From positions 358,426-422,425 of the forward strand of contig JAKMXF010000311.1 in NCBI GenBank assembly GCA_024704765.1: DNA of 64,000 bases. The letters run 5' to 3'. Numbering within the stretch: position 1 is the first letter of the stretch; each line of letters begins with the position of its first letter. Origin of the DNA: Oopsacas minuta (taxonomy: Eukaryota > Animalia > Porifera). Below, one piece after another: positions 9,737-39,694 of this stretch. The notes below the pieces were generated by a model. It did no database searches. It was given only the letters and a program-made list of their open reading frames with translations, and had not been told where the DNA came from. The translations under genes were made by a program, and so were the position numbers.

Positions 9737-10829
9737 ATGGCAACTCTACACCCAATGGAAACTGAATATACGATTCTTCCTCAAAGATTTGATGATGGCG
9801 GGGCGGAAGATAAGTTCGATGTAAGGTTAGATTATAGTGGGCGTGGGATGGGGGAAGAAAGACCAAAACCAGAACCAATAAAAAAGCCCGAATTAACCGA
9901 AGAAGAGAAGGTCGAACAGGCAAAAATACAGATTCTAAAAGATGCGAATAGAATAACAGAATTGGATTTGTTGACTAAATTAGCAGAAAAGATAACTCCA
10001 ACACAAGTTAGTGATATTAAGATTACTATGAAAATCTATAAGGAAGATTGGAAGGAAGCAATGAATGGACCTGGTTTAATTAAGTATTTGGATGAATTAA
10101 GCAAGAGCGAACCAAAACCGAATCGATTCAGTCCAAAGGATTATGATACTCCACCGGAGTATAATGCTGGGGTCTTAGCAGGGTATCTATTCAATATAGG
10201 TAAGTCAAAAGTTTATGCCAAATCCAAAATCACTGAACTTTGCCCTTGATCTGGCAACTGTGTACGCTCGTTTACACGTTATAAATGCAAAAATATTGTT
10301 TTGAGTGACGTACTATCTAGGTTTATATCAGTTGAGCAATGAAGCAAGATGGATTGAAGCAATAACTAGTATAGATGAACCTAAAGAGGAAGCAACAGTA
10401 GAACATTTCTTCGATAATTTGGTGGATAAACTGAAAAATAATAAAGAATTGTACTCAGAACTCAGATATAAAGCCGAAAATTATCCACGTAAAGTAGGAC
10501 AAGTAAGTACATACTATACTTTAGATGTGATGGGAGTTGACTGTAGTTATATTTGTGTTTGACTTAATATTGTATTTTAGATTCTGGAAGAATTATCTCA
10601 AGAAGGATATTTCCAGAGAAATTTAATAGAATTTTGTGCAACACTTGATTATAAAGGAAAATTCAAAATAAGAGAAGAGTTGCAAAAAGAATATTTGAAG
10701 TCATTTGACCGGAAGTATAAGGATGTGGAATTTAAGACAGAATTCTCAAGATTAGCTAGTAAATTGGCGAGTACAGAAGGAGAGAGCGTAGAAGATGATT
10801 ACAGTGATTACAGTGATTACAGTGATTGA
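9737..10829 (+). CDS. 3-exon hypothetical protein (9737-10199, 10321-10502, 10581-10829; 297 aa), possibly with two death-effector-like domains
   Basis: Phase-compatible GT-AG junctions. Two helical blocks have DED-like hydrophobic periodicity; acidic DDYSDYSDYSD tail. Confidence 0.6.
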
Positions 10830-10920
10830 AATGTGAATTTTGATTTTCATAATATTTTCACTACTTGTAGATATTCTGTGTGATATTATAAGTCAATAAT
10901 AAATTATGAATTTATTAAGT

Positions 10921-11017
10921 GGGTCCCAATTTGGAGTACATGGATCTCTTGGGGGACCACAGAATGTGCTAAAATTGGTATAGGGGCCCGTGGGCGAAAA
11001 AAGGTTGAGAACCGTTG
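10921..11017. mobile_element. hAT/Charlie-like terminal remnant
   Basis: aaaaaggttgagaaccgttg is the reverse complement of CAACGGTTCTCAACCTTTTT, a Charlie-type TIR, and is followed by acctagag. Confidence 0.45.
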
Positions 11018-11237
11018 ACCTAGAGTAAGATGACGTAGGTGATAACTTAAATTATACGAAATATTTTGTAACCAACTATATTGTAAATAGAACGCGTGTA
11101 TATATTTGATAATTATGTAAAGTATGTTTTCTCTCCAATTTATATATAGCACGAAAACAAAGTAAACAGTTTTTAGGGAGGAGGAGCAGTTCTATAGATA
11201 ATATCCATGATTCAATTTAATACATTAATAGAGTTAA

Positions 11238-12418
11238 TTAATTTTTCACATCTGTGAATGAGGGCATTGCATCTTCTAAGGTAGGAGCTCGAGTATGACC
11301 TTTACTGTTACGTCCGCCATTGAAATTCTTGTAGAAATAGACTTTTATCTAAATAAGAGTTGTTAGCAATAAGTACGGTAAACTCTCGTAATTTCGAAGC
11401 CCAATAGGCCGCGATAATTACTTCGATATAATCGACGTAATTATGTTATTTTCACTGTTTGGGACAATAATAGCACAAAATCAGACTACGTTATAAACGG
11501 GTATTTGGATGTATCCGTGCTCGTATAACAGGAGTTGACTGAAATTGATTTACTCCGCTTACAACGAATAAACCAACCACGATCCCAGTCCCTAGCAGTT
11601 CGTTATAAGGATAGTTTACTGTAATATCCATAGTCCATTATACTTACCTTTCTCCTACTGATGTAACAGAAGAATAAAGCAATTATTGTAAAGAAAGAGC
11701 AAAATAGAAAGAATGAGAACACAGACGTTTGATAGAAGTGTTTTGTAGTAACTAATGGTGCAATAGGTGTATTTGTATCATCCAGTTTTGTTTCTTTATC
11801 TGGTACCCCAGGTGTTGCATTTGGCATCAAATGTTCTGCATCTGGCGCCACAGGTTCTGCATCTGGCGCCACAGGTTCTGCATCTGGCGCCACAGGTTCT
11901 GCATCTGGCGCCACAGGTTCTGCATCTGGCGTCACAGGTCCTGCATCTGGTGTCACAGGTCCTGCATCTGGTGTCACAGGTCCTGCATCTGGTGCCTCGG
12001 CTTCAGTGGGTGAAGCTGTTATTACTGATGTTGCATTTGTTGTATTGGATGGTGGAGTTATCGCATTAACTTCTGGGGTATTAGATTCTGCAGATAAGGT
12101 TGTGCTTTCGGTTTTACTAGCCCCCGGCGTGTCTGGGATGTCCCACCTCTTCAATAATGCTTCCAGTACTTTGATAAATGTTTCGGTTTTCTTAAGTCCG
12201 TTCTTATCGTTAGATAACATCATCATGATTTTGACTTCTAGTTCTTTCTCGGTATCTTCTGGTATAGAAGCTTGTGTAGTGTCAGCTTTATTATTATTGT
12301 TTGGCACAACATTGCCACCATTACCGTTCTGTTCTCTCGCTTCTGATCTACCCAATATAAATAGATTGAGAACTAGAATAGATAGCAACAATGCACACTG
12401 CATATATTTCGGCCTCAT
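11238..12418 (-). CDS. Type I membrane mucin-like protein, TGN38/KCT2(C5orf15)-like; exons 12418-11648 and 11348-11238
   Basis: Signal peptide, T/P/A-rich ectodomain, TM followed by RRK. The phase-0 intron AAG|gtaagt...ttatttag|ATA gives the tail IKVYFYKNF...TLEDAMPSFTDVKN, similar to KCT2 NVNEAMPS. Confidence 0.55.
11836..11995 (-). repeat. 21-bp coding tandem repeat (DAGPVTP x3, DAEPVAP x4)
   Basis: tgcatctggcgccacaggttc / tgcatctggtgtcacaggtcc units are directly visible. Confidence 0.95.
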
Positions 12419-12897
12419 TCTATCTGTGCGAGAAGAGCTAATTGAAAATTACAAAATTTTGAAAAGATAAGTTGAGGATAATAACCTTATAATATCGATT
12501 TAGATACATATGAATAATCCAGTGTTGCCAGATGACCCCCACAAAGATCATGCCATGTCTATACCAACTTCACGCCGAAGTTCTTGGTGCATGTCAAGTT
12601 CTTGCCATAAGTCAAAATATATTAACTGGCATATAGCAAGGCGGTAGCAAGCAGATGTCAATTGGTCAGGTTGTCCTATGCAAGATATATGGGACACTAA
12701 GTTGGTCGGGTTGAAACCTGACCAACTGGACACTCTCCTACGGCCATGTATATATTATATAAGCATTCACCAGGGATAATAAGTCATAGACTATCGGGGT
12801 CATGCATTCATTTTGATAATTCTGCCTAAACTGATTGAGGAAAATACAGTGTAAAAGTTGTATAAGTATCCTAATTACGTAATAAGTAATCGCGTTG

Positions 12898-14337
12898 CTA
12901 TTCATCCAACAAAGTATCCAATTTGACAATCTTTTTACGATTGAGACTTTCAGGTATCAACATGCCGAACACGATACACAAAACAAGTGCAATTCCGTTT
13001 AGAACAAAAATGAAATGATAGTCGAATGGGAAAATATGTGTGTTGAGGGATACAGCGAATACGGTACCACCGTATATGGGAGCCATCGCCCTGAAAATAC
13101 TACAAATTGAGAGAGATAATCCGTTGACTGCACCTAGCTTATCGGGTGTAACCGAATTGTTTATGAACATTGATAAAGAAGCGAAAACCGCAGATATGAA
13201 TAGCCGCATGAATAGATTGAATAAACCGAGATAAACCACAGCTGGTATAGCGGATAATGCAGATGCAGACGGTATCAGTATGCACACAGGGATTAGTATA
13301 GCTATTGATACACTAAATGACCTCAAACCACCAAACAATTTCTCTAAAATCTGAAATATGAATAAACTGAAAGGTAACGTTATCAATGCACTAATGGCTA
13401 CGACTATTGAAAAATCTTTAATCGACATTTCTAGACCACCCAGATCACGTGGTGCTTTGACCCATAGAGGCAGTACTTCATCTAGAGACATCGTGACGAC
13501 AGAGAATAGAGAATATATGAATATAGTGAGCATGACTACCCAATCTGTAATCAAATGGTAGAATATACTCTTACGGACTATGGATACAAGTTGATGACCT
13601 AACCGTGTTTTGCTGGTACGGGGCGTTGCTAGCATTTCATCTGTCTCATTCTCTCCCTCACTATATACTTGGTCTTCTGCAACATTTATTGCGTGTGTAT
13701 TGGTTTGCTCCTTTACTGGCTCTTTCATGAAGAAATACACTATAATAACTCCAATAAGTAGAATTGCAGCATTCGCAGCTCCAGGTAATACAAAAGGATA
13801 CTTTACGAATATTTCGTATTTAGGAATATCATATTGCATGATTGGATCGGCTAATATTCCACTGAGTCCAGAGCTAAATACCAATCCTAAGCTGAACACT
13901 CCACCGAGGAATCCCATTGCAAACGGTTGAGTAGAATCGTCACTGTATTCTGATATGACTGCTTTAGCTGTTGGTACTATTCCATTGAAAAACCCAATTA
14001 GAAACCGGAATATTATGGCCACAATTACCGTAGTAGAAAAGCCGAAACCTAGAGTTACAAATGCGAGCAATACCCCGGAAATTATCAATACAATTCTACG
14101 TCCAAATTTGTCAGCCAGCAAACCCCAGACAAATGAACCAAGAATTCGTCCAACGAACTGAAAACTTGCAATGAGTCCTGAGTAGTAGCCAATATCCTTC
14201 TCATGCAGATCTGGAATTAAATGTTGTACCATCCAAGGAAGATATGGGAACACCTGAACCATAGTGTATATGCTTGAAAACAACGAAACCAAGGCTGGAG
14301 CACACCTCTTAACAACCAGGAGGTATTTGTTCACCAT
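12898..14337 (-). CDS. MFS transporter (DHA1/ZIFL1-like), intronless
   Basis: About 12 TM helices, MFS motif A GLLADKFGRRIVL, and GFFNGIVPTAKAVISE. Confidence 0.9.
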   Translation of the reverse strand: MVNKYLLVVKRCAPALVSLFSSIYTMVQVFPYLPWMVQHLIPDLHEKDIGYYSGLIASFQFVGRILGSFVWGLLADKFGRRIVLIISGVLLAFVTLGFGFSTTVIVAIIFRFLIGFFNGIVPTAKAVISEYSDDSTQPFAMGFLGGVFSLGLVFSSGLSGILADPIMQYDIPKYEIFVKYPFVLPGAANAAILLIGVIIVYFFMKEPVKEQTNTHAINVAEDQVYSEGENETDEMLATPRTSKTRLGHQLVSIVRKSIFYHLITDWVVMLTIFIYSLFSVVTMSLDEVLPLWVKAPRDLGGLEMSIKDFSIVVAISALITLPFSLFIFQILEKLFGGLRSFSVSIAILIPVCILIPSASALSAIPAVVYLGLFNLFMRLFISAVFASLSMFINNSVTPDKLGAVNGLSLSICSIFRAMAPIYGGTVFAVSLNTHIFPFDYHFIFVLNGIALVLCIVFGMLIPESLNRKKIVKLDTLLDE

Positions 14338-31025: not shown

Positions 31026-31743
31026 ATGCAACTGAAGAGTATAATCCGTGTAGAACTAATACAGACAGAAAACAGAGATTACAGTAACAGTATACATGTG
31101 TGTTACTCTAAATCTGATTCTGTTATCAGCATCAAACATAAGCTGCAGCTAGTGACAGGTATTCCAACAGATAATCAGATTCTATACCATGCTACTTCCT
31201 ATCTATCAGATTCTACCCTTATACATATCCTATCTCAAGCAAATCATCCTATTCCTACTCTACACATGCATGTATCTGTTAAGGGAGGAGCTGCAAGGCC
31301 TAGTAATCAATTTGCATCATTTATATTTAAAGATGTAACAAGAGAAGAATGCTTTGAGAATTGTAAAGTAGTTCTTCCGACCATCTTACTGGACTATTGA
31401 CAAAGGACTAAGTTTTATAGCAACTTGTTCTAATCCTTGCTGTATATCTGTGCAAAATAGACACAAAGTGTGTATCCCTAAGGGTATGTACCAACATCAT
31501 GGAGGATATGTGTCACTTCGTTGTGAAGTATTCAAATTGACATGCCCTGCTTGCCAATCTAAGATTCCTTCTCAAAATTGGTTTAATATAGTATTCTATA
31601 ATTGCACTGCTGATATAGAATGGAGGCTAACTGACGATACAGAAGGGGAGATAACACTTGTAACTGAAGATGGTAAGTACACTCAAGCAAAGGAGGGCAA
31701 CGGAACGAAAGAATATCATTCTTTAGATGCTACACTAAAGTGA
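31026..31743 (+). pseudogene. UBL-GG + Cys-rich domain, copy 1, with a net 2-nt frameshift near 31366-31396
   Basis: 31 nt between gagaat and actattgac versus 33 nt in copy 2; stop at 31400. The Cys-rich domain continues in another frame to 31743. Confidence 0.8.
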
Positions 31744-33245
31744 ATGAATGTGAAAAAATCTGGATTTAGTGTGTTATAGAATAATGACGTAAATTTAGAC
31801 TATGTTAGCGTGAAAATGGATTTTACTTGTAATTCTTGTCTATAATATAATTACTAAGCTTGTTTGTGAATAATTGATGTTATAATATATACAACTGCGG
31901 GCTTCGCTTGCTAGGTCGTTACGCGACAGCTTAGTACATCAGTTTAGCTTAAGTATGAAACAACCAGTATTCTTAGTAGTTTTGGTCGCTACGTGACGGA
32001 AAATATTCAGCACTTCGTGCATCAAGTATGAAATAGCAGAAATTTTAATTTTGTATTATCTATGGTCCATCCGAAATAATCACCTTCTGCGGTAAAACTT
32101 GATATGATACATGACTGTATATTAGCATCCAACTATACAAATAATGCAACTGAAGGGCCTAATCCGTGTAGAACTGATACAGACAGAAAACAGAGATTAT
32201 AATAACAGTATACATGTGTGTTACTCTAAATCTGATTCTGTTATCAGCATCAAACATAAGCTGCATCTAGTGACAGGTATTTCAACAGATAATCAGATTC
32301 TATACCATGCTACTTCCCATCTATCAGATTCTACTCCGATACATATCCTATCTCAAGCAAATCATCCTATTCCTACTCTACACATGCATGTATCTGTTAA
32401 GGGAGGAGCTGCAAGGCCTAGAAATGGCGCAGTTACAAGAGAAGAATGCTTTGAGAATCTTGAACTTGCTTCTTCCGCACCATATTACCGTACTATTGAC
32501 AAAGGACTAAGTTTTCTAGCAACTTGTTCTAATCCTTGCTGTATATCTGTACAAAATGGACACAGTGTGAGTATCCCTAAGGGTATGTACCCAAATCAGA
32601 AAGGATATGTGTCAATTCGTACTGAAGTATTCAAATTGAAATGCCCTGCTTGCCAATGTCTCATTCCTCCTCAAAATTGGGATAATATAGTACTCTATAA
32701 GTGCACTGCTGATATAGAATGGATTCTAACTGATGATACAGAAGGGAAGATAACACTTTTACCTGAAGATGGTAAGTACACTCAAGCAAAGCAGGGCAAC
32801 GAACTGAAAGAATATCAAGCTTTAACTGTTAGAGTAAAGTGAATGAATGTGAAAAACTCGGGATTTAGTGTGTTATAGAATAATGACGTAAATTTAAACC
32901 ATGTTAGCATGAAACTGGATTTTACTTGTAATTCTTGACTATAATATAATTCCTAAGCTTGTTTGCGAATAATTGATGTTATAATATATACAACTAGCGG
33001 GCTTCACTTGCTAGGTCGTTACGCGACAGTTTAGTGCATCAGTTTAGCTTAAGTATGAAACAACCAATTTTCTTAGTATTTTTGGTCGCTACGTGACGAA
33101 ACATATTCAGCACTTCGTGCCTCGAGTATATGAAATAGCAGAAATTTTAAATTTGTATTATCTATGGTCCATCCGAAATAATCGCCTTCTGCGGTAATAC
33201 TGGATGTGATGCGTGGCTTTATATTAGCACCCAACTATACAAATA
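31741..33245. repeat. Tandem duplication spacers (31741-32143 and 32840-33245); unit about 1.1 kb
   Basis: Near-identical intergenic sequence (gtgaatgaatgtgaaaaa...aactatacaaataATG); start codons are 1118 and 1102 nt apart. Confidence 0.9.
32144..32842 (+). CDS. Ubiquitin-like domain (88 aa, ends VKGG) fused to a Cys-rich domain, copy 2
   Basis: SDSVISIKHKL..TGISTDNQILY...LSD...TLHMHVSVKGG aligns to ubiquitin SDTIENVKAKI..EGIPPDQQRL...LED...TLHLVLRLRGG. It is followed by CSNPCC and CPAC. Confidence 0.85.
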   Translation: MQLKGLIRVELIQTENRDYNNSIHVCYSKSDSVISIKHKLHLVTGISTDNQILYHATSHLSDSTPIHILSQANHPIPTLHMHVSVKGGAARPRNGAVTREECFENLELASSAPYYRTIDKGLSFLATCSNPCCISVQNGHSVSIPKGMYPNQKGYVSIRTEVFKLKCPACQCLIPPQNWDNIVLYKCTADIEWILTDDTEGKITLLPEDGKYTQAKQGNELKEYQALTVRVK

Positions 33246-33965
33246 ATGCAACTGAAGAGTATAATCCGTGTAGAACTAATACAGAAAGAAAACAGAGATT
33301 ATAGTAACAGTATACATGTGTGTTACTCTAAATCTGATTCTGTTATCAGCATCAAACATAAGCTGCAGCTAGTGACAGGTATTCCAACAGATAATCAGAT
33401 TCTATACCATGCTACTTCCTATCTATCAGATTCTACCCTTATACATATCCTATCTCAAGCAAATCATCCTATTCCTACTCTACACATGCATGTATCTGTT
33501 AAGGGAGGAGCTGCAAGGCCTAGAAATGGATTTCAACCATTTACATTTAAAGATGTAACAAGTAATGACTGCTTTGAAAGCTGTAATTTTTCGGAATCTT
33601 CTCCATACTATTGTATCATCGACAAAGGGATCAGTTTCGAGGCTATTTGCACGAATAAATTATGTGATTCAGTTAATAATGATAGTCGTGTATTTATAAG
33701 CAAAGGTATGTATCGACATCAAAATGGTTATGTAGCCATTCGAACTGAAGTTTGTTTCTTAGAATGCCCAGCATGTGGCCAAAAGATTCCTTCAAAAAAT
33801 TGGCAGAATATCTTATTTAATGGCTGCACCGCGGAAATCACATGGGTCTTGATAGATGGATCAGGTGGCCAAACAACGCTGAAAACTGAGGATGGAAAAT
33901 TTATTCAAGTCAAACAGAATAAGGGAATGAAAGACTACCATTTATTAGATGTTCAACTTCAATAA
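33246..33965 (+). CDS. Ubiquitin-like domain fused to a Cys-rich domain, copy 3
   Basis: Same UBL, then KGISFEAICTNKLC...CPACGQKI...FNGC. Confidence 0.85.
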   Translation: MQLKSIIRVELIQKENRDYSNSIHVCYSKSDSVISIKHKLQLVTGIPTDNQILYHATSYLSDSTLIHILSQANHPIPTLHMHVSVKGGAARPRNGFQPFTFKDVTSNDCFESCNFSESSPYYCIIDKGISFEAICTNKLCDSVNNDSRVFISKGMYRHQNGYVAIRTEVCFLECPACGQKIPSKNWQNILFNGCTAEITWVLIDGSGGQTTLKTEDGKFIQVKQNKGMKDYHLLDVQLQ

Positions 33966-34386
33966 GTTTTATATTTAACCTCTTAGAAGGTATATGTTTA
34001 TGTGTGATAGATAGGCCGTAAATGAAGACTCTATGTATGTTTGCACATTTTTGATAAATTTGAATATTCATATCATTGATAGATTATTTGTTGCTTTAAT
34101 GGGTAACTAACTAATCATTAGTAATCTACAGTGCTATGTCCACAGACTTGGAGCCAGGGAAGCCGAAAAATGCTACCACAAATGTTTGTATTTCATTCCT
34201 AATCGCTCTATTTATCTTAATCCGTTTCTGCGTCTCTAAAGCCCCGTTTGTGGAAGTTTAGCCTGTGAGTACAGGCTAAACTTCCATCTATTTATAAATC
34301 CTTTGAAATCTAAGACAATATTCAGATTTGCAATAATCCAGAATAATTCCTTTTAAATGATACTATAGTAGATATCTTGGTGTTTC

Positions 34387-35334
34387 ATGGCATGTAAGCA
34401 ACCTCATAGTTACGGTGGAAATATTACCGAATCTCAACCTACAAGTCCAGGAAATGAAATTGACAAAAAGAAAACTCGAATAGACAAAAATAATCACGAT
34501 GTGAGTCTTGTGACTGGTATCCAAGATACAATTACAACTATCGGAGAAAATAGTATTGAGATCTCCGGAGTATCCTCGGAAGAATCAACTAAAATGAACA
34601 AATATTTCCAGACAGATAAGGGAAATGAAAGGATACCATCAGTAAAACAACCACATAGTGAGAGCTATTTCCAGAACTACACATTGATAGACATTATTCT
34701 ACACCCAAGGGAATCTGTATTGGGGTTTTGGAGGTATGATGAAGGGCCTCAATCGAATGAAACAACCAAAAAGAGCTCAAAACCATCTAACAAGCAATGT
34801 GTTACATTATCACGCAAGCAGTCAGGTAGGAAGAATTATACTCCTAAAATTACCAAAGAAGAGGTAACAAAGGAGAGAAACATCTTTAAAATGCTACAAC
34901 ATTGCTATACTACCCATGTCAATGAAATCGGCTTTATACAAGTGAAGTATAATTGGCCACAAAGACATCTCACTTTGGTACAGGGATTAAATCTACTTGT
35001 TACTTGCAAGAATCATGAATGTGAACAGTACATGCAGGGTGTTGTCTGTCCACGAGGAATGTTCAGTGATAGAAATGGTTACTGTCCTTTAGATTCGGAG
35101 TTATACAAAGCTAAGTGTCCTACTTGTAAATTGAAAATTACTCCAGATGAATCTTTTGGATTTGGATTCTACCAATGTTCTTTTCAGCTAACTTATATGT
35201 TAATGGATCAGAGAGAATACAGAATGAAACTAGAGAATAGTTCCAAGATATTCTACTTCAGAAGATTTAGCATATTAAGCAGCAAATTCAGATTTATGGA
35301 GGCTCACATCTCATTTGAAGAGGATATTGTTTAA
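34387..35334 (+). CDS. Cys-rich domain family member with a disordered N-terminal extension
   Basis: QGLNLLVTCKNHEC...VVCPRG...NGYC...CPTC...FYQC. Confidence 0.8.
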   Translation: MACKQPHSYGGNITESQPTSPGNEIDKKKTRIDKNNHDVSLVTGIQDTITTIGENSIEISGVSSEESTKMNKYFQTDKGNERIPSVKQPHSESYFQNYTLIDIILHPRESVLGFWRYDEGPQSNETTKKSSKPSNKQCVTLSRKQSGRKNYTPKITKEEVTKERNIFKMLQHCYTTHVNEIGFIQVKYNWPQRHLTLVQGLNLLVTCKNHECEQYMQGVVCPRGMFSDRNGYCPLDSELYKAKCPTCKLKITPDESFGFGFYQCSFQLTYMLMDQREYRMKLENSSKIFYFRRFSILSSKFRFMEAHISFEEDIV

Positions 35335-35832
35335 TTTATTTAGCTATTATTAACGGATCAAGTACATAGTTAGGTACTGTAATTATCATGTTAGAATGAT
35401 TGCTTTTGTGTGGTGAATATTCACAATGTACGATGGATTTTAGATTAGAAACTTTGGAAAGAAAATGTTGCCATAACTACATATGATGGCTCTAGATATT
35501 CTATAGTAACAAGTTATCCTCAGTATTACATTATTCATACAAACGAGCGATTCATTTGCTTGCGCTACGCGGCTTGAGAACACTCTGAGCTCGCAAAGAA
35601 CTCGGCACTTCGAGCATCGAATTTATATAGGAACAAAATATATGTAAATATGAGTGACCTGTGTGTAATTCAGGATCACTTAATCAATTACAACAAATGT
35701 ACCCGTAGAAAATAGTTTCTGAGACTATTTGAAATTTGTTTATTTTACATTCATAAAACAAAAATAAATATACATATGAGAAAATATTCATTAGTGCATA
35801 TATGGATATAATTTGTCGTTTAACAAAACATA

Positions 35833-36561
35833 GTGATGTCTAAAATGCACAGACCCTGTCGCAGGAGAACTAGGCGGCAACTTAAACAGAGAAATAAAGA
35901 TCCGTATGAAGTTAGGAGTAGATCACCCTGGAAAAGCAAAGATAACGATGATGATGATTCTGACTCAGAAATTGAGTTTAAATTCATGAAAGATGATCAT
36001 ATGAGGTATAATTCGAATTCAAGCAATCTATCTGAATACTCTACTATGAAAGAATTCAATAACTGCTACAACCATTTGCAATTTCCAAAAATTTTTGAGA
36101 AGAAAATAGCGATAGAACGATTGTTTAGAACACTGCCCAGCACAGACATAACTGATAGGTACAGCTATGCTAGGGTCTCAGTTGATTGGAGCGAGAAACA
36201 CTTGCAAATTGTACCCGGAGCTAACCTGTTAGCTACGTGTAAGAACTTTGAATGTGAATTTTTCCTAAAGGATGTTATCTGTCCGAGAGGTTTATATCCA
36301 GAAAGAAATGGTTATTGCCCAATGGATGGAGAAATTTACAGAATAAAATGCCCAATTTGCAAACAACGAATTACACCAGACGCTAGTATAGGGATTGGAT
36401 TCTTTCGTTGTGTTTTTAAAGTGTCTTACATGCTGAGAGCTTCTAAGGGGAGAACAGTAGAACTGAAAGCTGCTGGAGATACACTAGTATTTGCTAAATG
36501 CAGTAAATTTACCAATGAACTGTTCCTCTACCTTGATATTAATGTAGATCCTATTGTATAG
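35833..36561 (+). CDS. Cys-rich domain family member with a basic/acidic N-terminal extension
   Basis: PGANLLATCKNFEC...VICPRG...NGYC...CPIC...FFRC. Confidence 0.8.
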   Translation: MMSKMHRPCRRRTRRQLKQRNKDPYEVRSRSPWKSKDNDDDDSDSEIEFKFMKDDHMRYNSNSSNLSEYSTMKEFNNCYNHLQFPKIFEKKIAIERLFRTLPSTDITDRYSYARVSVDWSEKHLQIVPGANLLATCKNFECEFFLKDVICPRGLYPERNGYCPMDGEIYRIKCPICKQRITPDASIGIGFFRCVFKVSYMLRASKGRTVELKAAGDTLVFAKCSKFTNELFLYLDINVDPIV

Positions 36562-36762
36562 TTTGAAATTGGAAGAATTGATAATAATAGAGCTGGACTG
36601 TACTTATATTATTTGTTTGAATTGCTTTGTATAATTAACAAATAAGAATCAATACTTAGGATTATTTATTAAAGCCTCAGGGTAATACAATTACAGTTAC
36701 AAATATAGAAAATAATCACTTTTAGAAATGTATAGATACATACATACACGATACAAGTATCA

Positions 36763-37239
36763 TTATTTCACAAAGAGTATTAAGTACTCATATTGCTTAA
36801 GTTCTCCATCAGGTTTCAGTCTCTTGTATTTCCCCTTAGGACAATCGACATCAAACTCTCCAGCCTTATCGTCTTTAGTCCTCCAATCAATGTTTACATT
36901 ACAATCTGTGAAGATAAAATTTTCCAGATTGTTGGCGCCAATTTCTACCCCACAAGCTGGGCAAAAATTGTCAAACATTGCTTTTCTAACGTTACAAGTT
37001 CCAGGAGACCTTGCATCCCTGCAAAAACCCTTTTGTATACAGACTATTCCGTATCCAAAGGATTGGCAGTACGATTCACAGAAAGAATTAAAACATTTCA
37101 CATTGAAGTTTATCCCTTTACCTGCAGTCATGTAATCAGGTCCTGATTTTGCAAAGTCTCTCGTTTCAAAGCAATTTTCTGAAGTTGCATCCAATAATTC
37201 GAAATTTGTAAACATTCTTGGTGTATTATTAGAGGCCAT
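36763..37239 (-). CDS. Stand-alone Cys-rich domain family member (158 aa), inverted orientation
   Basis: KGINFNVKCFNSFC...CPAC...FTDCNVNIDW; closest in style to the C-terminal domains of the UBL fusions. Confidence 0.82.
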   Translation of the reverse strand: MASNNTPRMFTNFELLDATSENCFETRDFAKSGPDYMTAGKGINFNVKCFNSFCESYCQSFGYGIVCIQKGFCRDARSPGTCNVRKAMFDNFCPACGVEIGANNLENFIFTDCNVNIDWRTKDDKAGEFDVDCPKGKYKRLKPDGELKQYEYLILFVK

Positions 37240-37698
37240 TTGTGTGTCTGTGTTGAGATAATTTATACATAATATAGGTTATTAGGGATATTTATAAGAT
37301 CTGTAATTTTAAATTTAGTAACAACTTAATTAAATATTACGTAATACTTTCAGTAAAGTACCCAATAAAATTCCCTCTGCTAAAGATTCCAATATTCGTA
37401 AGTGTTTTATTCTAAATCTAGTTTGGTTAATTTTTGATATTGTTAACAAGTTATACAAATGATTTGTTAGACATTAGAATTGCACTGAATAATTAACAAA
37501 TATGAGAAGTATAACTTACTAATATTAATTAGAGTCCCAGGGTAAATTTAGTGGGTACATTACAGGAATAATTAAGTAATATAGCGCTTATTAATTGTAT
37601 AAGAAATACTAAATTTAGAAATCCATTGAAATATTTTTCATCCTTAAATCAACCCAAAATCTTATAAATACGTATTACCAAAATAAATTCTATATAAA

Positions 37699-38658
37699 TT
37701 GCAGAAATCAGCAAACATAACAAATACAATGGCTACTTCTCCAGAAAAGATACCATCAAACTATGGAGCATCAACCATAATGGATAGAGATAATAATTAC
37801 AGAGATTCACAAGACGGGCAGATACCGTCTGATATGATACCTTCAAAAAAACGGAAATTTCCAGAATATATAGAGGAAATGGACCCAAAAACTGTGCGAA
37901 AAAGCCAAACAACAAACTTAGAGATACGGCAGGAAATAACGAAAGACGCTTATATGCAAGAAAGGAGTGTATCGTTTCAGGAAGAAAATAGTGTTGAAAG
38001 TTGGAGTACAATTAGTGAGAATATATATGATCGCAGTTCTTCAATATCCAATATCAAAAAACCCGATCCTGAACTATTTCAGCCTGAGTCTGTCAAACAG
38101 GAAATGAATCCTCCTAAATTGAATACGGAAACAGAAACCAACAGAGCAGATTCCCTTGAGTATAAGAAACACATAACTCCTCCTGTATCCACATCCCATA
38201 ACCAAACAGAAGATGCATTATCATTTATAGACAATGTATTCTCAGAAATAGCAAGCAGACATTTGGTCATGATTGAGGATAATTGGAGCAAATGCGCTAT
38301 AGCTCCTATTCCTGGAATAAACCTCATCGCTGTGTGCAAAAACTTGGAAATTCATGATACGCTTAAAACCATAATTTGTCCTATGGGGATGTTTGTAGGT
38401 GCGAATGGATATTGTAGCGTCGACAGGGAAATTTATAGATTAACTTGCCCGCAATGCAAATTTAAGATAATCCCAGATAACTCACTATGTTTAGCATTCT
38501 ATCAATGCAAGTATACGATTACTTACCAAACAGAAAAGATGAATAGTAAGTCTGGAGAAACTATTGAAGGAATCGTAAAAGATAATGAACTTGTTTATGG
38601 AAGAGTTTTTAATACTGATGGTACTCCCTTTAACTATTTAGAAGTTGTTGTTGAATAA
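37699..38658 (+). CDS. Cys-rich domain family member with a long disordered N-terminus (likely start ATG 37729)
   Basis: PGINLIAVCKNLEIH...IICPMG...NGYC...CPQC...FYQC. Confidence 0.78.
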   Translation: MQKSANITNTMATSPEKIPSNYGASTIMDRDNNYRDSQDGQIPSDMIPSKKRKFPEYIEEMDPKTVRKSQTTNLEIRQEITKDAYMQERSVSFQEENSVESWSTISENIYDRSSSISNIKKPDPELFQPESVKQEMNPPKLNTETETNRADSLEYKKHITPPVSTSHNQTEDALSFIDNVFSEIASRHLVMIEDNWSKCAIAPIPGINLIAVCKNLEIHDTLKTIICPMGMFVGANGYCSVDREIYRLTCPQCKFKIIPDNSLCLAFYQCKYTITYQTEKMNSKSGETIEGIVKDNELVYGRVFNTDGTPFNYLEVVVE

Positions 38659-38803: not shown

Positions 38804-39694
38804 TTAACTTGTAGATACTCCTAATCCCATAGGTTGTAATGAATCTCTAGGAACTGTTCCTTTACGGGGGCAAAGTTGTGGATTGTTCGAATCAACCTCT
38901 TTTCTAGCATGATACCTCCAAGCCGAGGAAATGAAACTCACAGGGATGTATTTTTTCACTTCGTTCTCTTTCTCAACTAGTGAAAGGTATTCCTGATCCA
39001 ATAGCGGGAACCTCACATGACTTATTACTCTCTCTACTGTATCTCCTAATGATTTATTACTGGCTAATGCGTTAACGCCAGCCCATTCCTTGACTCTACT
39101 TAGAATCTCCACCTCGTCGATATTCAGTAGATCTGATTGCAGAATGAATGCTAGTGCTTCGTCTGAGATTTCTCTAAAAGCGCTGGTCTTGAAAACTTCC
39201 TCCGTCTTAACTTCAATGTATTCCAGACATTCAGCTTGCAAATCAACTTGCTCGTACATAAGGGCTGCTTGTACATATTCACATACAGTGTCTACGCTCA
39301 TGCTTTCCCGCATAAATTGTACACAAATCCGTCTCAATCCGTCTAATCCAAACTCTATAGCAGCTCTAAGTACTTCGGATACAAATTCAGAACTAAGTTT
39401 ACAGCTGTTTGTGTAAATGAATTCTAGAACCGATAAGAAGATAGGTGGGGAAATATCAGAGAGTACCAGTGGAGTATTGGGGTCCTCTCCCTCGCTGGGT
39501 GGGACAGAGAGCATAGCACGAAATACAGCACATCTGGCAGCTAGCATAGATCTATGTGAACACATTATACGACGCTCATCTCCCACTAAAAATTTAATAT
39601 CACTCCATTCCTCATCATCTATCATTTTACTCATTTCCTGTGCAAATGCATCAGGATCACCGTATAAGGTTTTCTCTTTCATTAAGCGGGACAT
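38804..39694 (-). CDS. BTBD19: BTB/POZ-BACK domain protein 19
   Basis: WSDIKFLVGDERR..SHRSMLAARC, FLSVLEFIYTNS, BACK domain, and C-terminal AWRYHA...CPRKGTVPR like BTBD19. Confidence 0.85.
   Translation of the reverse strand: MSRLMKEKTLYGDPDAFAQEMSKMIDDEEWSDIKFLVGDERRIMCSHRSMLAARCAVFRAMLSVPPSEGEDPNTPLVLSDISPPIFLSVLEFIYTNSCKLSSEFVSEVLRAAIEFGLDGLRRICVQFMRESMSVDTVCEYVQAALMYEQVDLQAECLEYIEVKTEEVFKTSAFREISDEALAFILQSDLLNIDEVEILSRVKEWAGVNALASNKSLGDTVERVISHVRFPLLDQEYLSLVEKENEVKKYIPVSFISSAWRYHARKEVDSNNPQLCPRKGTVPRDSLQPMGLGVSTS

Follow-up and report, generated by a model that had tools for sequence, protein, structure and literature searches.

An array of seven related genes

Positions 31026-38658 of the window (the whole 64,000-nucleotide stretch of Oopsacas minuta DNA analysed here) hold seven paralogous single-exon genes which, according to the ORF list and alignments, have a C-terminal Cys-containing domain (C-domain) in common (Table 1). 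A hidden Markov model of this domain finds exactly seven places in the 64 kb, with E-values from 1e-26 to 5e-49, and the ORF is intact in six of the seven copies. The initial annotation had assigned a common C-terminal domain to every ORF of the interval, and this holds for every real gene, the short overlapping ORFs being spurious. Its domain length of about 135 aa was an underestimate (nearer 145-150 aa here), but its three copies fused to an 88-aa ubiquitin-like (UBL) module are indeed found: in copies 1-3 the module ends in VKGG directly at the junction with its partner, and AARP follows. The minus-strand orientation of copy6 had been left out.

Table 1. Coordinates of the array genes and their parts (positions in the window)
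Feature	Position	Strand	Description
copy1	31026-31743	+	UBL and frameshifted C-domain
copy1 UBL	31026..31289	+	88 aa, VKGG end; from ORF list; Pfam ubiquitin E 1e-4, below family cut-off
copy1 C-domain	31290..31743	+	frameshift near 31368-31377
copy2 5' flank	31897..32143	+	duplicated upstream of copy3 (32997-33245), about 91-92% identical
copy2	32144..32842	+	232 aa; UBL 32144-32407, C-domain 32408-32842
copy3	33246..33965	+	239 aa; UBL 33246-33509, C-domain 33510-33965
copy4	34387..35334	+	164-aa low-complexity N-terminal region; C-domain 34879-35334; UBL-less subfamily
copy5	35836..36561	+	basic N-terminal region; C-domain 36121-36561; UBL-less subfamily
copy6	36763..37239	-	158 aa, C-domain only; orientation opposite to that of the other copies
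copy7	37729..38658	+	180-aa N-terminal region; C-domain 38269-38658; most divergent copy

In copy1, piecewise translation meets a stop in frame 0 at 31400 and continues in frame +1 to 31743; the DNA alignment attributes the shift to a 2-nt gap relative to copy2. A variant contig (X3) carries one extra T behind 31368, with which the frame would stay broken. The UBL of this copy is 99 % identical in DNA to that of copy3. The duplicated 5' flank of copies 2 and 3 is probably a shared promoter or 5'UTR. Orthologs of copies 4 and 5 lie at 10492-11493 and 12784-13554 of a related genome (L001). Copy6 groups in the tree with the UBL-fused subfamily, and its L001 ortholog (11783-12517) carries a UBL; no UBL remnant is present upstream of copy6 in the window. 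On this comparison copy6 appears to have been UBL-fused ancestrally, like copies 1-3.

Around the array lie assorted housekeeping genes. Their order (Cornichon, C2 protein, array, BTB-BACK, proline racemase) is conserved in the related genome, which is so diverged that dS is saturated and in which the array orthologs are one-to-one.

The ubiquitin-like module and the C-domain family

Single UBL sequences score 18.7-22.2 bits against the Pfam ubiquitin model (PF00240), below its cut-off of 25.4. A profile of 11 sponge UBLs matches mono-ubiquitin chains of the PDB at E 2e-7, and hhalign reaches a probability of 96.1 % (E 3e-9) with modules of canonical ubiquitin, the UBL Gly-Gly aligning with G75-G76. 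The N-terminal module is thus a ubiquitin homologue, as initially proposed; its identity with ubiquitin over the stretches that align is about 19-32 %. Arg72 of ubiquitin is replaced by Ser or Pro, Ile44 by Tyr, Lys48 by Ser, and Leu73-Arg74 by Val/Ile-Lys/Arg; the changes at Arg72 and Leu73-Arg74 make recognition by general deubiquitinases uncertain. The possibility that the module is canonical ubiquitin supplying the pool of free ubiquitin was also considered and set aside, given the diverged sequence. A single-sequence AlphaFold run of the whole copy3 fusion gave a pLDDT of 32.5.

The C-domain motif reads, in copy6 numbering, G42-x-N/S44-x4-C49-x-N51-x2-C54 ... G71 ... C93-P94-x-C96 ... F110-x2-C113, much as first annotated; copy7, with Ile for C54, is the lone exception. 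A profile from the seven copies alone retrieves 430 outside representative proteins at E<=1e-3 that share the motif, which is therefore not a chance pattern, and 147 family hits were examined. C49 and C96 are invariant wherever aligned among these 147 relatives and C93 is Cys in all but one (146/147). C54 is kept in 134 and C113 in 138 of the 146 aligned members; none has lost both, and every member retains at least four of the five Cys. Two Cys pairs thus sit in knuckles (C-x-N-x2-C and C-P-x-C) conserved across the family, which makes the Zn binding suggested at the outset plausible in the form of a Cys4-type metal site; the C-domain is probably zinc-binding. Residues that never or hardly ever vary are Cys, Gly, Asn and Pro; a set of catalytic type is absent from them, a pattern that fits a binding module.

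Neither the seven copies nor the 147 relatives match any Pfam-A family, and PDB sequence searches with the C-domain were blank or insignificant. The family is nameless in any library searched and has neither a Pfam model nor a solved structural relative. The AlphaFold model of copy6 (pLDDT 94.7) predicts an all-beta domain of about 150 aa, a beta-sandwich. Foldseek with this model finds nothing in the PDB at E<=1e-3, and VIA-align gives a best Z of 4.0 in a wide search and 3.6 in a second look, with no PDB match above Z 4.0. The best structural neighbours, cupin/jelly-roll and beta-gamma-crystallin folds, are likewise all-beta sandwiches. However, they lack zinc knuckles and match below the level expected for related folds (Z at most 4.0, Atlas TM 0.40); membership in them was rejected.

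Closer structural relatives are found in giant viruses and fungi, in line with the statement of the initial annotation that hypothetical proteins joining ubiquitin to a Cys-rich part exist in protists and giant viruses. Pandoravirus salinus 'Ubiquitin' (S4W648), the Barrevirus 'Ring and ubiquitin domain protein' (A0A3G4ZQ93) and a Mucoromycota cluster share the predicted fold, joined to ubiquitin (TM by query 0.72-0.74, E 2e-9, Atlas TM 0.74, at 15-16 % sequence identity). Their ubiquitin is canonical and accompanied by a RING finger; in the sponge genes the UBL is diverged and a RING is lacking. The design of a ubiquitin-like tag extended by the C-domain recurs in rotifers, fungi and giant viruses, with a patchy distribution, and the link with ubiquitin extends to animal, fungal and giant-virus members of the family. 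Ubiquitin or a UBL lies directly upstream of the domain in 43 of the 147 hits; Pfam ubiquitin is present in 42 of the 147, some near-canonical with E down to 1.7e-50. The domain is also found without any UBL. At the junction, 33 of the 43 fused hits have Gly-Gly; the next residue is mostly G or A, and the domain begins 3-10 residues further on. Every UBL copy at four sponge loci retains Gly-Gly; 10 of the 43 fused relatives lack it, so that in some lineages the UBL would be a permanent domain.

Evolution of the two halves of the gene

Among paralogs in each of three genomes (the window, L001 and L003), the UBL is 92-100 % identical exactly from ATG to Gly-Gly, whereas in the same comparison flanks and C-domains are only 35-65 % identical. 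Between species the UBLs are 57-59 % identical. Within a genome UBL dS is 0.02-0.12, as against more than 1.4 for the C-domain; in trees the UBLs cluster by species, the C-domains by ortholog. These comparisons show that the UBL module evolves in concert within each genome, and indicate homogenisation by gene conversion with its boundary at the Gly-Gly codons. Ubiquitin-coding units evolve likewise in concert (PMC10457151).

The C-domains take the opposite course. Ortholog dN is 0.26-0.42, compared with 0.05-0.16 for neighbouring genes, and synonymous diversity between haplotypes is about 5-fold higher in the array than in flanking genes. Copies 1 and 2, whose 3' flanks are 94.4 % identical, differ in their C-domains by 43.2 nonsynonymous (Nd) and 3.8 synonymous (Sd) changes, a dN/dS of 3.3 (p 0.018), and the variant contig over copy1 has six amino-acid changes and no synonymous one. 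In at least this one recent duplicate pair, divergence is thus faster than neutral. Between the two haplotypes of the related species, omega is 0.35, that is, net purifying selection. Sequence comparison hence shows C-domain divergence that is fast or positive, the signal of positive selection coming from one recent pair and one variant contig, with copy1 itself frameshifted. The orthology tree, ortholog dN and the copy1/copy2 ratio bear out the first impression of a lineage-expanded, fast-evolving family. As far as the sequences go, what is new here is the concerted evolution of the UBL, together with C-domains that are orthologous across species and diverge fast.

What the array may encode

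The closest parallels are ubiquitin-eL40 (UBA52), ubiquitin-eS31 (RPS27A) and FUBI-eS30 (FAU), which like the array genes have an N-terminal ubiquitin or UBL ending in Gly-Gly. In the ubiquitin-ribosomal fusions a small Cys4 zinc-binding partner follows directly, as does a partner with a predicted Cys4 site in the array, and their ubiquitin-coding units share concerted evolution with the array UBL (PMC10457151). The array partner, however, is a predicted beta-sandwich of about 150 aa rather than a ribosomal protein, it belongs to a diversifying tandem array, and its UBL is remote from ubiquitin and lacks Arg72, Ile44 and Lys48. With ISG15 and other modifiers ending in Gly-Gly, the array UBL shares diverged ubiquitin homology, the terminus and a C-terminal extension that would need removal, but it is single rather than a tandem pair, its extension is a conserved folded domain, and the locus has neither conjugation enzymes in the window nor an interferon-type promoter motif. 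TRIM-type SPRY domains offer an analogy of role only: a beta-sandwich, tandem arrays, fast evolution and association with ubiquitin or RING. Structure searches of the PDB found no sequence or fold relationship of the C-domain to SPRY, and the binding role here is one that we infer.

The reading that we favour, tentatively and at somewhat less than an even chance, is that of a ubiquitin-fusion-type precursor cut after Gly-Gly to give a common UBL and a variable binding protein built as a zinc beta-sandwich; cleavage and zinc binding, like any link to conflict or immunity, are putative. General deubiquitinases cut linear ubiquitin fusions unless the residue after ubiquitin is Pro, and a deubiquitinase-type protease would here release two products. 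One, a UBL identical from every array gene, might act mainly in cis as an aid to folding or expression, possibly also as a modifier; for eL40 and eS31, both zinc proteins, the action of ubiquitin as a cis-chaperone has been reviewed (PMC8122580). The other, stabilised by a predicted Cys4 zinc site made of the two knuckles, would serve as a binding or recognition module under pressure to diversify.

An attached UBL can also dock its protein, as in the UBL-UBA shuttle factors Rad23 and Dsk2 and in parkin, and an uncleaved sponge UBL might bring a ligand of the C-domain to the proteasome or another UBL receptor. Fused relatives without Gly-Gly in which the UBL still directly precedes the domain (10/43), the lack of Arg72 in the sponge UBL, and single chains of ubiquitin, domain and RING in Mucoromycota and giant viruses are consistent with this. 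We regard it as unlikely, though not strongly so, given Gly-Gly at the exact junction in most fused relatives (33/43) and in every UBL copy of the four sponge loci. Near-canonical members with LRLRGG-G would be cut by ordinary deubiquitinases, the domain seems able to work without a UBL, judging from copy6 and its UBL-fused ortholog, and homogenisation of the UBL alone is easier to explain as one shared product. It is distinctly unlikely that the array serves mainly to produce the UBL as a dedicated modifier for conjugation, in the manner of ISG15, FUBI or NEDD8, with the C-domains as minor carriers or propeptides. Eukaryotes and giant viruses alike conserve the C-domain with its invariant Cys and Gly positions, in UBL-less proteins too, which argues against a tail that could be dispensed with; purifying selection acts on the domain in comparisons both of haplotypes and of species, and E1 and E2 genes are absent from the window. 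The terminal Gly-Gly, the homology to ubiquitin, concerted evolution like that of ubiquitin genes and a UBL ORF left intact in the frameshifted copy1 would nevertheless suit a modifier.

The initial annotation had pointed to the nearby IRF gene as a hint of defence. Beta-sandwiches that bind pathogen or viral proteins, in the way of SPRY domains in TRIM proteins, and are controlled by the IRF gene would account for the tandem array, the dN/dS above 1 in the recent pair, the all-nonsynonymous variants, the raised synonymous diversity between haplotypes, and homologues in giant viruses and in RING-linked forms. However, the ISRE-type GAAANNGAAA, for which it had proposed a promoter scan, has 14 sites in the window, none of them in array promoters or intergenic regions and one inside the copy7 coding sequence. 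With housekeeping neighbours, an overall omega of 0.35 and an IRF gene merely 4-9 kb off in a compact genome, such an innate-immune repertoire is rather unlikely, and the link between IRF and defence finds no support here. An origin from giant viruses or mobile elements, or decay of genes without host function, is a very remote prospect: relatives in Pandoravirus and Barrevirus, the patchy distribution and the frameshift of copy1 point that way, against conserved synteny, one-to-one orthologs in a dS-saturated genome, six of seven ORFs intact and under purifying selection, and no transposon features seen at the array.

Beyond the precursor that we favour, one may speculate on an undescribed but widespread system of eukaryotes and giant viruses, in which a protease-released, homogenised UBL would be a dedicated modifier or activator and the co-translated, diversifying new-fold domain its target-recognition arm. 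Glass sponges, rotifers and Mucoromycota would then possess a repertoire for conflict or immunity inside the cell, copied by giant viruses; we rate this as rather improbable.

To our knowledge natural ubiquitin fusions are few, namely eL40, eS31, FUBI-eS30 and scattered algal cases, and the array points to a large family of partners beyond them. What purpose the non-ribosomal ubiquitin fusions serve is unknown, according to a published review (PMC8122580). The C-domain, a candidate both for a new fold and for a recognition module, is put forward for structural and biochemical work. Within one sponge gene, tag and partner follow opposite evolutionary courses, the former homogenised, the latter diverging. 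This makes the array a clean natural setting in which to ask for what reason cells make certain proteins as extensions of ubiquitin.

The gene array and its ubiquitin-like module

According to the ORF list and alignments, seven genes with alignable C-termini lie between 29 and 41 kb of the window. A profile HMM of their common C-terminal domain (C-domain) matches exactly seven places across the 64-kb window, and thus bears out the cluster described in the initial annotation. The three fusions to a ubiquitin-like module (UBL) that it proposed also stand: copies 1–3 open with an 88-aa module that ends in VKGG and is followed by AARP.

Genes of the array, in window positions
Gene	Position	Strand	Architecture	Source
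copy1	31026-31400, then other frame to 31743		UBL + C-domain	ORF list, alignment
copy2	32144-32842		UBL + C-domain	ORF list, alignment
copy3	33246-33965		UBL + C-domain	ORF list, alignment
copy4	34387-35334		without UBL	ORF list, alignment
copy5	35836-36561		without UBL	ORF list, alignment
copy6	36763-37239	minus	without UBL	ORF list, alignment
copy7	37729-38658		without UBL	ORF list, alignment

In the DNA alignment and translation, the frame of copy1 is broken by a gap of 2 nt against copy2 near 31368-31377, which the one extra T of a variant contig at 31368 does not mend; the UBL ORF of copy1 hence counts as intact and its C-domain as broken. At the N-terminus of copy4 (34387-34425) the start motif M-A-x-K-Q-P-H-S-Y-G-G is kept in the relatives P0003, P0013, P0017 and P0022, the N-terminal extension of the copy4 orthologs being otherwise poorly conserved. 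On both sides of the inverted copy6 there is a 32-nt direct repeat (36616-36647 and 37474-37505, 84% identical), which may be the trace of a rearrangement or due to chance.

The depth of contigs from the sequencing run X2 reaches thousands over gene bodies and is zero in the intergenic bins 31863-31969 and 32933-33039; the contigs terminate in Illumina adapter. In two of them, ...CTTCATAAAAAA(AA)CTTAC is attached some 20 nt before the ATG of copy2 and that of copy3 (32124, 33226), and this attached sequence is absent from the window. X2 resembles RNA whose 5' end comes from a spliced leader or a remote exon. Spliced leaders have been described in another glass sponge (PMC10282587). The CTTCATAAAAAA junctions could also stem from a paralog located elsewhere in the genome. 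X2 was not taken as proof of expression: the kind of run is not on record, none of the runs being listed as RNA, and paralog contigs can map twice.

Single UBL copies match the Pfam ubiquitin family solely below the cut-off. However, since a profile from 11 sponge UBLs (A6) hits mono-ubiquitin chains with an E-value of 2e-7, aligning ubiquitin residues 9-76 and placing its GG on G75-G76, and since hhalign relates the sponge UBLs to the canonical ubiquitin modules of distant family members with 96.1% probability (E 3e-9), homology to ubiquitin is well supported. In comparison with ubiquitin, Ile44 is replaced by Tyr, Lys48 by Ser and Arg72 by Ser (Pro in relatives), and the tail reads V-K-G-G or I-R-G-G in place of L-R-G-G. 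Arg72 of ubiquitin is important for E1 recognition. Because functionally important positions including this one are altered, entry of the sponge UBL into the ordinary ubiquitin pathway seems unlikely; its tail, given the similarity to that of ubiquitin, could be cleavable. An AlphaFold model of the whole of copy3, computed from the single sequence without an alignment, reached a pLDDT of 32.5. Within the UBL coding sequence, at 31174-31235 and likewise in copies 2 and 3, two adjoining 31-nt units are 68–71% alike, perhaps by chance since the period is no multiple of three.

The C-domain and its relatives

The motif initially ascribed to the C-domain was recovered: G42, N44, C49, N51, C54, G71, G80, C93, P94, C96 and C113 (copy6 numbering) are conserved, although copy7 has Ile at position 54. 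Conserved positions are all Cys, Gly, Asn or Pro, and the conservation analysis found no catalytic-looking set among them. All five Cys are kept in 125 of 147 members, C54 being lost in 12, C113 in 8 and both in none, a mutual exclusivity that is not statistically significant at these numbers. The two knuckles, C-x-N-x2-C and C-P-x-C, are arranged as in a classical Cys4 zinc site, and the C-domain is predicted to bind zinc there.

No Pfam family covers the C-domain in the seven copies or in the 147 relatives, and PDB sequence searches with domain profiles came back blank or insignificant; RAD18 UBZ was discarded as a relative, its match (E 0.18, insignificant) being confined to the CPxC. An AlphaFold model of copy6, built on a 65-sequence alignment of the C-domain (A4), is confident and all-beta (pLDDT 94.7, pTM 0.85). 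Foldseek found 0 matches to it in the PDB at E<=1e-3, and VIA-align, run against 48,161 representative chains, gave a top Z of 4.0 for a beta-gamma-crystallin (3.6 on a second look). As VIA-align itself states that Z values of 7–8 are typical of unrelated models, the modelled fold has no solved structural relative at a useful level. The matches to this model in the ESM Atlas are its own family alone (TM 0.74–0.79), cupins coming next at TM 0.40. The structural evidence is too weak for a cupin or crystallin assignment, as it is for calling the umbrella toxin UmbB or nucleoplasmin fold relatives.

The seven-copy profile retrieves 430 sequences at E<=1e-3, and 81 at E<=1e-10, from 1.84 billion representative proteins. 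In 43 of the 147 hits examined, ubiquitin or a UBL stands directly upstream of the C-domain; Pfam ubiquitin is found in 42 of the 147, sometimes in near-canonical form (MQIFVK...LRLRGG). GG is present at the junction in 33 of the 43 fused hits and missing from 10; the residue that follows is mostly Gly (17) or Ala (6), and the domain begins 3–10 residues further on. The C-domain also occurs by itself, in tandem repeats (at most 11 stretches, in a protein of 1428 aa) and, in one case, fused to a trypsin-like peptidase. Five relatives of 680–1430 aa from long eukaryotic contigs (P0002, P0005, P0011, P0016 and P0021) contain 5–11 tandem stretches, each matching just the first ~110 domain positions; they may be a variant of the family built from repeats, or gene models in which neighbouring members of tandem arrays were merged.

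ESM Atlas clusters of the same fold belong chiefly to Rotifera (60 to 1269 members), also to Porifera and to Mucoromycota, where ubiquitin, C-domain and RING occur together. Viral proteins with the fold in BFVD are "Ubiquitin" S4W648 of Pandoravirus salinus (TM 0.72, E 2e-9) and, from a Barrevirus, a "Ring and ubiquitin domain protein" (TM 0.74), so that the initial suggestion of relatives in giant viruses and other eukaryotes holds. Word-index protein searches with copy6, the 65-sequence alignment and a canonical member returned almost exclusively the queries and close relatives from sponges, all unnamed, and are uninformative because the family is too divergent for such a tool. A description of the C-domain was not found in the literature on ubiquitin fusions, including that on rotifers, giant viruses, Oopsacas and concerted evolution; an algal ubiquitin-fusion paper lists ubiquitin–"hypothetical protein" fusions, which are uncharacterised there.

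Two paralogs without UBL on contigs from related genomes (L001:9350-10150 and L003:8923-9606) open with MGCVQCKRMRK... and MGCLNCSYFK..., starts which we take to resemble the myristoylation/palmitoylation motif of Src-family kinases; the analogy suggests that some family members may be membrane-anchored. None of the seven window copies has such a start. On another organism's contig (L002:8026-9000), an array of four family genes fused to canonical ubiquitin is directly followed by a multi-exon gene for a USP-type deubiquitinase, whose Cys-box exon presumably resembles USP47. This proximity may be coincidental.

Evolution of the two modules

In a related genome, Cornichon, the C2 protein, six family genes, BTB-BACK and proline racemase are kept in synteny, and the array is present on two haplotype contigs of one sample, L001 and L005. 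The C-domain tree comprises two subfamilies, one without UBL (copies 4, 5 and 7) and one UBL-fused (copies 1–3 and 6), and pairs copy4 with L001 10492, copy5 with L001 12784, copy6 with L001 11783 and copies 2/3 with L001 6819. The C-domain would appear to function on its own, because copy6 is inverted and UBL-less while its L001 ortholog carries the UBL and lies on the plus strand. A UBL remnant was looked for beside copy6 in the window and not found.

Within the window, L001 and L003, sliding-window comparison finds paralogs 92–100% identical over a block that stretches roughly from the start codon (ATG) as far as the GG codons (nt ~260), as against 35–65% upstream and downstream of this block, except that copies 2 and 3 have their 5' flank in common as well. 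Within genomes, paralog dS is 0.02–0.12 in the UBL and above 1.4 in the C-domain; between species, amino-acid identity is 57–59% for the UBL and 50–64% for the C-domains of ortholog pairs; in trees, the UBL groups by species and the C-domain by ortholog. Because synonymous sites are homogenised as well, purifying selection does not suffice, and the pattern is one of concerted evolution through gene conversion limited to the UBL module. Ubiquitin-coding units are known to behave likewise, fusion loci exchanging sequence with one another (PMC10457151).

Between the window and L001, ortholog dN is 0.26–0.42 for C-domains compared with 0.05 for BTB, 0.15 for Cornichon and 0.16 for the C2 protein; dN/dS is unusable as a ratio for these orthologs, dS being saturated. 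For the recent copy1/copy2 pair (121 codons; Nd 43.2, Sd 3.8) dN/dS is 3.3 (binomial p 0.018), and the 3' non-coding flank is 94.4% identical. Relaxed constraint alone cannot take dN/dS beyond 1, and an old paralog acting as conversion donor would have brought along many synonymous changes. A contig of another run (X3) over copy1 shows 8 nucleotide differences, corresponding to 6 amino-acid changes and 0 synonymous ones. However, omega between the L001 and L005 haplotypes is 0.35 in C-domains (0.14 in neighbours), which argues against positive selection as a general feature. The array of the related species is also a local hot spot of polymorphism between these haplotypes: synonymous divergence is 0.048–0.073 in array genes versus 0.0095 in five flanking genes, a ~5–7x excess that points to paralog exchange or long-lived alleles.

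Locus context and proposed mechanism

The array is flanked by Cornichon, a 1201-aa C2-domain protein, a BTB-BACK protein and proline-racemase-like genes, and mitochondrial carrier, LRR, GT8 glycosyltransferase, MFS transporter and Hobbit-family genes lie nearby. This context is one of mixed housekeeping genes and does not form an immune island. Its single-exon compact genes agree with published glass-sponge genomes (PMC10282587). The defence link initially drawn from a neighbouring IRF gene is not borne out by these neighbours, nor by a scan of the window, in which the promoters of the array contain no ISRE-type GAAANNGAAA sites. The family may nevertheless have a defensive role, in view of its diversification, polymorphism and giant-virus homologues. 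The BTB-BACK protein (38804-39694, minus strand; 91.5% identical to its ortholog) adjoins the array in both genomes. Since BTB-BACK proteins are commonly CUL3 adaptors, a functional tie to the array is conceivable.

The best-supported mechanism, to which we give slightly less than even credence, is that the family genes encode precursors of the ubiquitin-fusion type. The main rival, an adaptor that is left uncleaved and keeps its UBL attached, is favoured by the ten fused relatives without GG and by the occurrence of ubiquitin, C-domain and RING as single chains, and appears rather improbable. If the family genes do encode ubiquitin-fusion-type precursors, a protease would cut after GG and release a UBL common to all UBL-fused genes, the other product being a variable zinc beta-sandwich protein, probably with a binding role, which would be driven to diversify. 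The homogenisation of the UBL is what would be expected if every gene must deliver one identical UBL.
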